Assembly: GCA_009103225.1 (NCBI GenBank)
Contig: RHPI01002438.1
Coordinates: 936,755-1,000,754 of the forward strand
Source: Chlorokybus atmophyticus
Lineage: Eukaryota > Plantae > Mesostigma and Chlorokybus algae
Direction of reading: 5' to 3'
Length of the DNA stretch: 64,000 bases
The notes below the pieces were generated by a model, which was not told the DNA's origin, searched no databases, and saw only the letters and a list, made by a program, of their open reading frames with translations. Below are positions 46,559 through 48,924 of the stretch, piece after piece. The stretch's first letter is position 1, and every line of letters starts with the position of its first letter. The position numbers and the translations under genes were made by a program.

Positions 46559-48924
46559 TTAGTGCATGATGCAGGCGGTGAGGGGCTTGCGCACATCCGC
46601 GCGAACCAAAGACCGCCTCGTGACCTTGGTGGAAAGCACCTCAGTGTCTGCTCCTCCAACTGATGCAGCGAATGTTGTCTCTTTGGGCTCAGCAAACAGC
46701 CCATCAACCTCTGCAGAAGGAGGAGAAGTGAGTAAAAACTCACTGTACACAACAGCACACATACACACAATGTGATCATGCAAGTATTTTGCATTGGTTA
46801 CCGTAATCAGAGGGGCTGCCGGCGACAATGCCCGCGCCGTTGAGGCTCTTGCCCACCATCACGGGCTTGCCTTGCGCATCGCGCGCAACGCGCACAGTTT
46901 GACCTGTTGTGGACAGTTGGTTCAGGATTAAACATGTGTCTGTTGCTGTGTGGCTCAAAGCAGAAGTTGTATCTTACACTTTATGCGTGTATAAACTTAC
47001 CGAGCACGCCCTGTGTCAGCTGGGACAGGTCAATCTTGTTGAGGAAGAAGTCCAGGTGGTCACCGGCGTTTACAGTCATGTCCAAACCGTTGCCCAGCAC
47101 GCGCACATGAGGCTCCTGCAAAGCCAGCACAAGATGAGTTTGAGATTCATCACAACACGCACATGGACACACACACAGGTGCAAACACGCATGGGCGCGA
47201 ACGCGTATAAACATATACACACGCACATGCATGCACACGCGCGCGTGCATACACACTCACCCACCCACGCACCCACCCACTTTCCCTCACCTCATACGAC
47301 AGCTGCAGCTTGTACCCTCCCACATACGTCGCCTCCGGCTTAAACTTCGGCACATCATCCTTATTCTCCGTGAGTCCCAGGAGGTGTCCCTCGGCGGACT
47401 CCTGGTCCGGGACCACCAAGACTCCGCCAAAAGGACGAACCAGGGACGGGTCGGAGGATAAAGTGGCTTCAATTAACAGACGAGGACCCACGCCGGATAG
47501 AGTCACGCCTAAGGCGGTCATCACTGTGGACTTGGAGTGCTTCATCCAGCCCTGAGAGGAGAGGGTCAGAGGGTCAGAGGGTGAGTGGGGATTGATAGAC
47601 CAACAGGTGGACTTACTGCTCGGTCTTGGGGGAGAGGGCGCCAGAAGCGAGCGTTGATGATGAGGCCAGAGACGGGGTCCGAAATTAGGTTGTAGAACCT
47701 GAGTGACAACAAGTAGTGAGGTTAGCACTTACACAGGGAGTGAGACACACGTGTGCGCACACAAACAGGCACACGCAGAGAGAGAGAGAGAGAGAGAGAG
47801 AGAGAGAGAGAGAGAGAGAGAGAGAGAGAGAGAGAGAGAGAGNAGAGAGAGAGAGAGAGAGAGAGAGAGAGAGAGAGAGAGAGAGAGAGAGAGAGAGAGA
47901 GAGAGAGAGAGAGAGAGAGAGAGAGAGAGAGAGAGAGAGAGAGAGAGAGAGAGAGAGAGAGAGAGAGAGAGAGAGAGAGAGAGAGAGAGAGAGAGAGAGA
48001 GAGAGAGAGAGAGAGAGAGAGAGAGAGAGAGAGAGAGAGAGAGAGAGAGAGAGAGAGAGAGAGAGAGAGAGAGAGAGAGAGAGAGAGAGAGAGAGAGAGA
48101 GAGAGAGAGAGAGAGAGCGAGAGCGAGAGCGAGAGAGAGAGAGAGAGAGAGAGAGAGAGAGAGAGAGAGAGAGAGAGAGAGACTCCTTCACTACTATCCT
48201 CTCACCTTCCTTCACCAGAATGGTAGCCGTCACCCATAAACTCGAACTCCTGTCCCCTGAATCCCTTGAAGTGGGGGTCGCCCTTGCCGCCAGGAGCGGG
48301 ACCGGGCACGGGCGCAGCCACGGGGACGGGAACGGGCGCGGGGACGGGAGCAGGGCCGGGAGCGGCGGCCTCTGTGGGAGGAGCGGCTGTCACAGCCATC
48401 TGCGAGAGAAAGTGTGTACATGTGTATGTGTGGACCTGATAGGTGGCACTCAAGACCAGCATGCTTAGGTCATTCTTCCAGTGCATTGATCAGCCGAGTT
48501 CTTGCTCTCCAGTAAGCTTCAGCAGCTGCCTTACCTTCATGCCTGCGTAGGCGCAGTGTCTGTCGACCTGGCACATGAAGTAGTTTGTTCCTGCTTTGAG
48601 TGTATAGCGTAGCGGTGAGGCGCCTGGGGTGGAAAGCATGGTGGTGGCGAAGATGTTGCAGCGCTGCCAGTCGGCCAGGTTGCTCACGGTCGAGACAGTG
48701 TGCTCCCACGCAGGCACCACGTTGAACACCAGCTCGTCACCAGCTTCGAACTCTATGCCCGCAGCCCAACGCTGGTAGAAACCCTGGTCGGCCTGGTAGG
48801 TCCAGCCTGGTCCGCCTGACCCGCCCACAACGAAGGTGCGCCCAGCCCCAGCAGCAGCCGACACCAGGGCCAGCGTCACCAAGGACGCCAGCGCCACGGA
48901 CGCAGCCATCCTGCTGGACTTCAT
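46559..48924 (-). CDS. Secreted phytocyanin (cupredoxin) + Pro/Ala linker + GDPH/root-cap-like domain fusion; 7 exons
   Basis: Signal peptide, then TFVVGG..GW, GDELVF, EHTV and YFMCQVDRHCAYAGMK (His, Cys, His, Met Cu ligands). Linker APGPAPVPAPVP. Then GDPHFKGFRGQEFEFMG, FYNLISDP..LIINARF, HLDF and QGVLGQT. Exons 48924-48535, 48399-48206, 47698-47617, 47551-47291, plus three more to the stop at 46559. Confidence 0.85.
47777..48182. repeat. About 400-bp (AG)n microsatellite in intron 2 of the phytocyanin fusion gene
   Basis: Read directly; includes one N at 47843 and (GAGAGC)3 variants. Confidence 0.97.

Follow-up and report, generated by a model that had tools for sequence, protein, structure and literature searches.

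The question raised by a locus in a 64,000-nucleotide stretch of the Chlorokybus atmophyticus genome (contig RHPI01002438.1, positions 936,755 to 1,000,754; hereafter the window) is whether a blue-copper domain and a GDPH motif, a site of self-cleavage in animal proteins, belong to one protein, and whether that protein could cut itself. Our reading, to which we assign a probability of roughly one half as a whole, is that the locus is one expressed gene for a 431-aa secreted chimera made up of a signal peptide, a phytocyanin, a linker and a DPH domain, the last being a VWD-fold domain of the root cap protein (RCP) type that has kept the complete motif and would be cut between the GD and the PH.

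Gene structure

The locus occupies 48924-46559 on the minus strand, and its splice table gives seven exons encoding 431 aa. The 1296 nt of coding sequence (431 codons and a stop) run from an ATG at 48924 to a TAA at 46561-46559, so that the first-pass annotation had the span of the seven exons (46559-48924) right. All six introns are canonical GT...CAG introns, the reading frame is kept across the exons, and GC3 of the exons is 0.61-0.79 vs. a GC content of 0.40-0.55 in the introns. By Pfam, phmmer searches of the PDB and hydropathy, exon 1 (48535..48924, 130 codons) encodes a signal peptide (approximately residues 1-27) and the phytocyanin domain. Intron 1 (48400..48534; 135 nt, GT..CAG, phase 0) lies between the copper domain and the exon that carries linker and motif. 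The first part of exon 2 (48286..48399) translates into a 38-aa linker of Ala, Pro, Val and Gly; the GDPHF motif, located by motif scan and phmmer, follows at 48268..48282 with the predicted scissile bond between Asp171 and Pro172, and the last part (48206..48267) encodes KGFRGQEFEFMGDGYHSGEG and then a split Arg codon, which hhalign comparison suggests are the first strands of the C-terminal domain. Intron 2 (47699..48205; 507 nt in the splice table) is taken up for ~400 nt by a (CT)n microsatellite, in which one N occurs, and has a branch-like CTAAC ahead of the CAG acceptor.

A 213-nt Logan contig from a public run (X1) consists of 48382-48399 and 48535-48729. Because it skips exactly intron 1, it supports the fusion of the copper domain to the linker; it spans this junction only, and its exon-2 anchor of 18 nt is under the 31-nt anchor rule. 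The join is in frame and at the predicted GT-AG borders.

It is very improbable that a pseudogene, or a phytocyanin gene next to a separate GDPH-domain gene, has been mistaken here for one gene. The first codon of exon 2 is an ATG, but a protein begun there would have no signal peptide. Read evidence is confined to the exon 1-2 junction, yet there the contig links the two exons exactly, and linker and GDPHF share a single exon. Intron 2 holds the long microsatellite and an N. The exact 144-aa exon-1 ORF is absent from the record, and exon 4 (87 aa) gave 0 matches by phmmer among 1.84 billion representative proteins. Against these points stand the six canonical introns, the kept frames and the high GC3 of each exon. 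Two separate genes were rejected as a model of the locus on the exon 1-2 contig, the exon common to linker and GDPHF, and the canonical, frame-keeping introns.

Copper domain, linker and C-terminus

The N-terminus has a hydrophobic stretch (residues 7-26, mean Kyte-Doolittle hydropathy 1.94) preceded by K2/R5, consistent with the signal peptide called in the first pass. Residues 41-125 of exon 1 match Pfam PF02298 (Cu_bind_like) with 50 bits vs. a cut-off of 20.8 (E 3e-13), and phmmer matches of exon 1 in the PDB include stellacyanin (1jer, 3.9e-11) and cucumber basic protein (2cbp, 3e-10). In both alignments the predicted type-1 copper ligands (His75, Cys118, His123 and Met129) coincide with those of the known structures, and against 2cbp the disulfide pair Cys89/Cys124 falls on the two paired cysteines; relative to 2cbp, the His-Met loop has one additional residue. 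A word search with exon 1, covering candidates of 72-228 aa, returned 0 matches. Judged by sequence, the N-terminal domain is a phytocyanin with a predicted copper site, and the full His/Cys/His/Met set that had been read from the translation holds up.

The linker of 38 aa contains 13 Pro, 11 Ala and 12 AP/VP/GP/TP dipeptides, an AGP-type composition that confirms its earlier description as AP/VP/GP-rich. Exon 7 with its TAA stop (46559..46710) translates into a hydrophilic C-terminus. No GPI-type hydrophobic tail was found in it, the final 25 aa having a hydropathy of -0.05 and the best 15-aa window of exon 7 reaching 0.65; the lack of a GPI signal, noted before, therefore stands, with a 260-aa domain after the linker instead. 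A signal peptide, a Cu_bind_like domain with the phytocyanin disulfide and an AP/VP/GP-rich glycomodule are likewise found in plastocyanin-like AGPs (PAGs), in early nodulin-like proteins and in further phytocyanins, but the algal protein differs from them in having this globular C-terminal domain in place of the hydrophobic GPI-attachment signal. Compared with all of these groups it keeps the full His/Cys/His/Met site, with the longer His-Met loop relative to cucumber basic protein.

Of the three cysteines in exon 1, one is the copper ligand and two are the phytocyanin pair; just one Cys lies in the C-terminal domain, close to the end of exon 7 (…PLTACIMH). With one Cys in this domain, there would be no mucin-like inter-fragment disulfide to hold two halves of a cleaved chain together.

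The GDPH motif and animal VWD domains

GDPHF occurs once in the six-frame translation of the window, on the minus strand at 48282-48268, where the first pass had placed it. In a phmmer search of the PDB, exon 2 matched the VWD repeats of FCGBP (8r0t_A) with a whole-sequence E of 5.5e-7, at ~10 bits per repeat; the aligned stretch is GDPHFKGFRGQEFEFMGD in the alga and GDPHYVSFDGKRFDFMGT in FCGBP, and an extended motif, GDPH[FY]xxFxGxxFxFMG, is common to exon 2 and the FCGBP repeats. Exons 3 and 4 had no match in the PDB by phmmer. The complete GDPH followed by [FY]xxFxGxxFxFMG is shared with animal VWD proteins that carry the site (FCGBP, MUC2, MUC5AC, MUC4, SUSD2, RGM A/B/C and BMPER), in which a beta-sandwich opens at GDPH. 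The algal protein differs from them in its plant-lineage host and in having no C8, TIL or E modules and no Pfam VWD match. The VWD strand ahead of GDPH has no obvious counterpart in the algal protein, where the Pro-rich linker runs up to the motif. In FCGBP, SUSD2 and RGM a disulfide retains the cleaved halves, whereas the algal protein has no such Cys pair.

Relation to root cap proteins

RCPs, also known by their DPH domain, have a signal peptide, a variable N-terminal part and a C-terminal domain of ~250-280 aa that, in its algal form, starts from Asp-Pro-His (PMC10796529). The algal layout fits this definition: signal peptide, variable N-terminal part, and GDPH immediately after the linker, with 261 aa from Asp171 to His431. 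The family comprises ~2000 plant proteins of unknown function, and its conserved part has been described in the RCP literature as a "beta-sandwich starting with DPH or DPR".

Exon-wise comparison by hhalign with two RCP profiles (A1, and A3, in which single exons were set against 88 land-plant RCPs) placed exon 2 at the DPRFxGGDGxxFYFHG columns (P 0.0009 with A1, 0.0049 with A3). Exon 3 (47617..47698), which begins FYNLISDPVSGLIINARFW... and would be the counterpart of the land-plant block FCLVSDxxLHINAHFIG, fell directly behind the exon-2 match (P 0.0041 and 0.0019). Exon 4 (47291..47551, 87 codons), which the searches and hhalign indicate to be a poorly conserved middle of the domain, was at the expected place with A1 (P 0.11) and unplaced with A3. 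Exon 5 (47001..47115) ends ...GDHLDFFLNKIDLSQLTQGVL(G), the putative counterpart of the AHLDLGFKFxxLSxxVDGVLG that opens Pfam Root_cap, and matched at the expected columns (P 0.094 with A1, 0.029 with A3). Exon 6 (46802..46903) continues with (G)QTVRVARDAQGKPVMVGK..., and reading the split codon completes GVLGQT over the splice site; MAFFT aligns its QT.R with QTYR and its KPVMVG with MPVMGG in plant RCPs, a placement that hhalign did not confirm with A1 or A3. The empirical background from the same window was 1/240 for exon 2, 1/240 for exon 3 and 3/240 for exon 5, and a Fisher combination over all six exons gave about 1.5e-4 to 1.6e-4.

Other searches of this region returned little, and exon 4 gave nothing usable in the ESM Atlas. 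When exons 2-7 were scanned singly (E up to 10), Pfam VWD, Root_cap and ITI_HC_C gave no match; the Root_cap profile has 57 positions, and its region is spread over exons 5-7 in this exon-wise scan. HMMER profiles of land-plant RCPs run against the six-frame pieces of the window were not significant, the exon-2 piece ranking 44th and the exon-5 piece giving the top single-domain score, with a non-significant E of about 5. The "root-cap-like/VWD-like" domain of the first-pass annotation is thus upheld exon by exon in the matches of exon 2 to FCGBP and of exons 2, 3 and 5, in order, to the RCP profile, and is not recovered by Pfam Root_cap or VWD exon-wise.

Taken as sequence, the C-terminal domain belongs weakly with the RCP family, at the level of motifs. 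The land-plant RCPs that we fetched are all Pfam Root_cap (PF06830). With RCPs (PF06830; Matsuyama 1999; PMC10796529; bioRxiv 10.1101/2024.01.29.577848) the algal protein shares secretion, a streptophyte distribution and, in the same order, the motifs GDP.F.G..G..F.F.G, L.SD..L.INA.F and HLD......L.....GVLGQT. It differs from land-plant members in its very divergent sequence, which has no exon-wise Pfam match, in carrying DPH vs. their DPR, and in an N-terminal part that is a recognisable blue-copper domain with an AGP-type linker.

Fold and position of the Asp-Pro bond

The fold was examined on a land-plant RCP proxy, modelled from an 88-sequence alignment with a pLDDT of 76; this model superseded an earlier, poor one from 19 sequences (pLDDT 54). 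In a Foldseek search with the RCP model, VWD-containing proteins, including RGMB, made up 48 of the top 50 matches (ranks 1-48), the best being FCGBP D10 with an E of 2e-4. VIA-align of the model gave Z scores of 9.2-12.7 for 19 VWD/RGM chains, the next score being 5.8, and paired Pro7 of the model with FCGBP Pro4081 and with RGMB residue 169. According to this model the land-plant RCP domain has the VWD fold, and its Asp-Pro superposes exactly on the Asp-Pro that is cut in FCGBP and RGMB. For the algal domain itself we infer the VWD fold from this land-plant proxy. By sequence profile, Pfam VWD (PF00094) was sub-threshold in 2 of 19 land-plant RCPs (0.074) and in none of the 88 among the matches listed, and RCP profile A3 had no match among PDB sequences.

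The profile ITI_HC_C (PF06668) was sub-threshold in 53 of the 88 land-plant RCPs, the best match having an E of 6.9e-4 and ~17 bits vs. a cut-off of 27; these matches cover profile positions 2-84 and lie just behind Asp-Pro. Together with the extended FCGBP motif and the proxy fold, they carry the analogy to VWD, RGM and ITIH proteins, first drawn from the motif, beyond a four-letter coincidence. In ITIH heavy chains, too, a cargo is followed by Asp-Pro-His-Phe and then by a VWD-like sandwich, which in ITIH is removed, and the new Asp is able to form an ester with a glycan. The cargo there is a VWA/integrin-like chain vs. a cupredoxin in the algal protein, which has no known acceptor glycan, and the RCP matches to the ITIH profile are all below the Pfam cut-off, with none from the exons of the window.

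Proposed self-cleavage at Asp171

In the mechanism that we propose, the side chain of Asp171 would attack its own carbonyl after folding in the secretory pathway, and the chain would break between Asp171 and Pro172. With no disulfide bridging the halves, the wall or mucilage would receive a copper-AGP part (~145 aa) separated from the VWD-like part (260 aa). This copper-AGP part would end in a transiently reactive Asp anhydride, whose fate would be hydrolysis or, with lower probability, reaction with a hydroxyl group of a polysaccharide, as in ITIH.

The background chemistry of GDPH agrees with published work: all FCGBP domains with GDPH are cleaved (PMC8267560), the cleavage needs both the Asp and the His of the motif, and a VWD-like sandwich with GDPH is also present in ITIH3/5/6 (PMC10880436). 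Self-cleavage of the algal protein is a reasonable prediction on this basis. No report of cleavage of any RCP was found in the literature.

There is nevertheless an appreciable chance that the protein stays whole, as a lectin-like or adhesive RCP/VWD sandwich that holds the glycosylated copper domain non-covalently, with Asp-Pro-His as a structural turn. Asp-Pro-Arg is invariant in land-plant RCPs, with Arg in place of His in 88 of 88 aligned, and cleavage of FCGBP requires the His (PMC10880436); the conserved Asp-Pro may thus be structural rather than catalytic, and the substitution suggests that the family can work without cleaving. RCPs have been compared to lectins (bioRxiv 10.1101/2024.01.29.577848), and many VWD domains have no GDPH and are never cleaved. 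A further, weak counter-hint to cleavage comes from the Ancylonema DUF3494-DPH ice-binding protein, which according to the literature stands alone among RCPs in having an N-terminal part of known function: its ~55 kDa spot on a 2D gel corresponds to the full-length mass, although identification by MS failed (PMC10796529). An uncleaved protein is harder to reconcile with the algal copy itself, which has the complete GDPH and the FxGxxFxFMG of the cleaved FCGBP repeats, and with the exact equivalence of the site on the proxy fold; of the animal proteins examined, most with GDPH at such a position are cut there (PMC8267560, PMC10880436).

A special case of the self-cleavage that we favour is that the Asp anhydride at the end of the freed copper-AGP part reacts with a wall or mucilage polymer, giving an ester or amide bond that replaces a GPI anchor. 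Whatever supports cleavage supports this as well, as do the recurrent sub-threshold similarity of RCPs to ITI_HC_C, the absent GPI signal, the lack of a disulfide retaining the N-terminal part, and the precedent of ITIH, where the new Asp is transferred to a glycan, chondroitin sulfate (PMC8267560, PMC7170535). We consider such anchoring unlikely: the FCGBP anhydride is merely hydrolysed, with no cross-link found (PMC8267560), and neither an acceptor nor an enzyme-free transfer is on record in plants or algae. Similarly speculative, and doubtful for now, is the idea that the DPH domain is an ancient self-cleaving module of the VWD/ITIH type by which early streptophytes would bond a fused cargo through the new Asp to wall or mucilage polysaccharide, enzyme-free and independent of GPI, and which was later disabled by the His to Arg change in land-plant RCPs.

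Implications and related architectures

Our tests place the RCP family in the VWD fold and connect it, weakly but repeatedly, to the profile of the ITIH propeptide domain; we found no paper that links RCPs to VWD domains or RCP Asp-Pro to self-cleavage, or that pairs GDPH with "root cap" or Chlorokybus with phytocyanin. The algal gene offers the clearest natural test case, having a complete GDPH, an easily assayed blue-copper cargo and no disulfide to mask cleavage. If the protein cleaves, it would provide the first mechanism for the RCP family, show GDPH autoprocessing in the plant lineage as well as in animals and suggest a GPI-independent route by which early streptophytes put redox proteins in their walls; failing that, the fusion would still combine two well-known plant families in a new architecture.

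We found no description of a phytocyanin-GDPH/RCP fusion in the literature, and the best 120 of 1633 RCP matches in our survey were all from land plants, none with PF02298. PF02298 and PF06830 are co-mentioned only in a poplar HRGP catalogue, as separate proteins. Land-plant HRGP-RCP chimeras such as Populus PtEXT30 (PF06830; PMC5073881) are also secreted and also place a Pro-rich glycomodule before a root-cap-type domain, but they have no copper domain and bear extensin-type repeats.

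Gene structure and support for the fusion

The fusion gene lies on the minus strand. Reading of region 49200–46300, with frames, splice signals, and composition evaluated by script, gave seven exons, each delimited by frame and splice signals: E1 (48924–48535), E2 (48399–48206), E3 (47698–47617), E4 (47551–47291), E5 (47115–47001), E6 (46903–46802), and E7 (46710–46559, with the stop codon TAA at 46561–46559). All six introns (135, 507, 65, 175, 97, and 91 nt) start with GT and end with CAG behind a pyrimidine tract, the joined reading frame is unbroken (1296 nt, 431 codons plus stop), and GC3 of the exons is 0.61–0.79 vs. 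an intron GC of 0.40–0.55. The positions assigned to the gene (46559–48924) and to its GDPHF motif (48268–48282) in the first-pass annotation are exact by this check, and six-frame translation of the 64-kb window contains no second motif of this kind.

Because the linker and GDPHF share one exon (E2), the fusion hinges on intron 1 alone. A 213-nt contig from one public run (labeled ‘RNA?’) covers 48382–48399 and 48535–48729 with zero mismatches and skips the predicted intron exactly, joining E1 to E2 as expected for the single gene proposed at first pass. Its E2 anchor of 18 nt falls below the read tool's 31-nt rule for bridging records, and the contig is therefore counted as good, not formal, support. 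An exact 18-mer at the predicted acceptor is no chance event, and the missing intron argues that the run is RNA. Predicted junctions 2–6 are supported by splice signals and frame. A gene-model artefact in place of a true fusion is very improbable.

Within intron 2 (47770–48180, minus strand) lies a ~400-nt microsatellite, (CT)n/(GA)n, broken up by short GCTCTC stretches and by one N at ~47843; it yields spurious ORFs of 150–250 aa in either orientation (RE and SL repeats). Retention of this intron would lead to an immediate stop (…GEGR then TGA, 48201–48210) and a 195-aa product of signal peptide, phytocyanin, linker, and GDPHF…, with most of the C-terminal domain missing. A 118-aa ATG ORF in another frame (48737–49093, minus strand) overlaps the 5′ end and start codon of the gene; it probably has no coding role or acts as an upstream ORF within the leader. 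Elsewhere, an ORF at 11530–12225 (plus strand) contains a Cys_rich_FGFR repeat (PF00839, 2.4e-17) like those of Golgi apparatus protein 1/ESL-1.

Signal peptide, copper domain, and linker

E1 begins with a classical signal peptide (K2/R5, a 20-residue stretch of mean hydropathy 1.94, then AAG-AG) and matches Pfam Cu_bind_like with 50 bits (cut-off 20.8). Among solved structures it matches phytocyanins only: stellacyanin (1jer, 3.9e-11), cucumber basic protein (2cbp, 3e-10), mavicyanin, umecyanin, and plantacyanin. In these alignments the copper ligand positions are occupied by His75, Cys118, His123, and Met129, and the disulfide positions by Cys89 and Cys124. The sole oddity is the copper loop, Cys-x4-His-x5-Met (residues 118–129), in which the His–Met spacing exceeds the x4 of cucumber basic protein by one residue, a change that may tune the copper site or weaken its axial ligand.

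E2 opens with a 38-residue Ala/Pro/Val/Gly linker in which 13 residues are Pro and AP/VP/GP/TP dipeptides occur 12 times. Such a non-contiguous-Pro pattern is an arabinogalactan carrier in plant proteins, and the PAG class provides a comparison (PMC5073881). The C-terminus of the fusion protein is hydrophilic and therefore lacks a GPI-type signal. Pfam match, ligand alignment, composition, and hydropathy hence agree with the initial description of a phytocyanin with a full ligand set, an AGP-like linker, and no GPI signal.

Relation of the C-terminal domain to root cap proteins

Root cap proteins (RCPs, PF06830) are a streptophyte-specific family of about 2000 proteins of function stated as unknown, in which a signal peptide and a variable N-terminal part precede a conserved region of ~250–280 aa; the latter is a beta-sandwich whose first residues are DPH in the unicellular members of the streptophytes, DPR in those of land plants, and whose end is the 57-aa Pfam Root_cap region (Prochazkova et al. 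2024, PMC10796529; Raymond 2024, bioRxiv 10.1101/2024.01.29.577848). The Ancylonema ice-binding protein is the sole RCP with an N-terminal part of known function (PMC10796529; bioRxiv 10.1101/2024.01.29.577848).

The C-terminal half was searched exon by exon. Single exons gave no Pfam match to Root_cap, VWD, or ITI_HC_C and no significant HMMER match to RCPs, and E4 had no relative among 1.84 billion representative proteins. The missing Root_cap match is unsurprising, since the 57-position model would span exons 5–7. Against the PDB, E2 matched mouse FCGBP with a whole-sequence E of 5.5e-7, a score summed over several VWD repeats, each pairing GDPHFKGFRGQEFEFMGD with, e.g., GDPHYVSFDGKRFDFMGT; the likeness to VWD thus runs ~14 residues past the GDPH letters. 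The matched repeats have Met before the Gly of GDPH, as does the algal protein.

To gather RCP members, a degenerate nucleotide pattern for [DN]GVLGQTYR was run over metagenome contigs. Of the 37 loci retrieved, about 25 are RCP genes of host plants in which a single ORF spans the entire domain, all matching Pfam Root_cap at ~1e-28. Many of the JGI/ENA ‘metagenome’ contigs among loci L002–L037 (phyllosphere, rhizosphere, etc.) are host-plant DNA with intron-less RCP genes. In MAFFT alignments the window exons fall beneath plant RCP motifs with order preserved: GDPHFKGFRGQEFEFMG beneath GDPRFTGGDGNTFYFHG, LISDPVSGLIINARF beneath LVSDP--NLHINAHF, DHLDFFLNKIDLSQLTQGVL beneath AHLDLGFKFYSLSNEVDGVL, and QT.R and KPVMVG beneath QTYR and MPVMGG. 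Alignment of single exons with hhalign to an 88-sequence land-plant RCP profile, its members drawn from a profile search with 1633 RCP hits, gave P values of 0.0049 (E2), 0.0019 (E3), and 0.029 (E5), placed in adjacent RCP columns in the correct order; E4, E6, and E7 were uninformative. A 19-sequence profile gave a similar outcome, and Fisher's combination over all six exons (E2–E7) was ~1.5e-4. As an empirical control, 240 segments of 27 or 38 aa were drawn at random from the 64-kb window translated in six frames; 1, 1, and 3 of them scored at least as well as E2, E3, and E5, respectively.

From these sequence comparisons, we conclude that the C-terminal domain is probably a distant relative of the RCP/DPH domain. 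It starts with DPH, spans 261 aa, and lies C-terminal to a signal peptide and variable part, as in the family definition. The root-cap-like assignment made at first pass thus stands on the ordered hhalign placements and this layout, and not on an exon-wise Pfam match.

Predicted fold of root cap proteins

The fold was examined on a land-plant RCP proxy (L022:737–1507) with the 88-sequence alignment. Its model has a mean pLDDT of 76, with >90 across most of residues 20–170. In a Foldseek comparison of the proxy with the PDB, VWD-containing proteins, including RGMB, fill the first 48 ranks and 48–49 of the 50 matches listed; the best is FCGBP D10 (8qci_B, E 2e-4, probability 1.00). A search of 48,161 chains independent of Foldseek returned 19 VWD/RGM chains at Z 9.2–12.7 (123–154 residues aligned, rmsd 2.8–4.4 Å), the next match having Z 5.8. 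A poorer first model gave an identical list of fold matches.

The structural alignments begin at proxy residues 5–7 and, for cleaved chains, exactly at Pro7 of Asp6-Pro7-Arg8. Pro7 is aligned to FCGBP residue 4081 and RGMB residue 169; the FCGBP scissile bond is Asp4080|Pro4081 (PMC10880436). The alignments extend to proxy residues 209–216, and the Pfam Root_cap segment covers residues 165–218. At least the first part of this 57-aa segment may therefore lie inside the VWD-aligned range and form no separate domain, a tentative reading because residues 186–198 are modeled with low confidence.

Sub-threshold Pfam ITI_HC_C (PF06668) matches occur in 53/88 land-plant RCPs (60%; best E 6.9e-4), at profile positions 2–84 and always directly downstream of the invariant Asp-Pro-Arg. 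This is the sole recurrent secondary family among the 88 and a family-level hint of homology; the link has no mention in PMC10796529 or bioRxiv 10.1101/2024.01.29.577848. In ITIH3/5/6, GDPH lies within an unannotated VWD-like sandwich (Yeshaya et al. 2024, PMC10880436). Together, fold, site, and, weakly, profile connect the VWD, RGM, and ITIH groups to RCPs, bearing out on the land-plant proxy the likeness proposed for the algal domain.

Predicted cleavage at Asp171|Pro172

GDPH in VWD-type folds undergoes self-cleavage between Asp and Pro via Asp side-chain attack; the Asp anhydride so formed reacts with water or, in ITIH, becomes ester-linked to chondroitin sulfate, and every GDPH-bearing FCGBP domain is cleaved (PMC8267560). 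Cleavage of FCGBP D10, in which the Gly–Asp bond is cis, is blocked by D4080A, D4080N, and H4082N (PMC10880436). Each of Gly, Asp, Pro, and His occurs in the algal protein. The best reading, by analogy, is a predicted chain break at Asp171|Pro172 that would set free a copper-AGP fragment of ~145 aa (probability about 0.5). With one Cys in the C-terminal domain, and with ligand or disulfide positions already assigned to all three in the copper domain, cleavage would part the halves, whereas those of FCGBP, SUSD2, and RGM remain disulfide-linked. Covalent capture of the fragment by wall or mucilage polysaccharide, a subset of this reading, appears unlikely.

The main rival is an intact two-module matrix protein whose sandwich would serve as an adhesive or lectin-like anchor, quite possible at odds well short of even. 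It is favored by the DPR state of land-plant RCPs, with Asp-Pro-Arg invariant in the 88-sequence alignment, and by an Ancylonema DPH protein spot of ~55 kDa, full-length-sized and MS-unconfirmed (PMC10796529); the complete GDPH of the algal protein speaks for cleavage.

Novelty of the architecture

Phytocyanins, PAGs, RCPs, Pro-rich RCP chimeras (PtEXT30, PMC5073881), and GDPH autocleavage are already known. VWD, GDPH, and cleavage are not mentioned in either RCP paper (PMC10796529; bioRxiv 10.1101/2024.01.29.577848), and no literature linking RCPs to VWD/RGM/ITIH was found. The model-based assignment of RCPs to the VWD fold, in which the family's Asp-Pro coincides with the scissile position, appears to be new, as does the resulting prediction that algal GDPH members self-cleave. 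The copper-domain/AGP/RCP architecture also appears new, in keeping with the first-pass annotation: no description of a copper domain combined with an RCP was found in the literature, and PF02298 is absent from the best 120 of 1633 RCPs in a profile search. The architecture may already be present unremarked in databases. Among the same best 120 of 1633, a Corchorus protein (P0089) is annotated as Cyclase (PF04199) plus Root_cap, which makes it either one of the rare RCPs whose N-terminal domain can be recognized or the product of merging two gene models.
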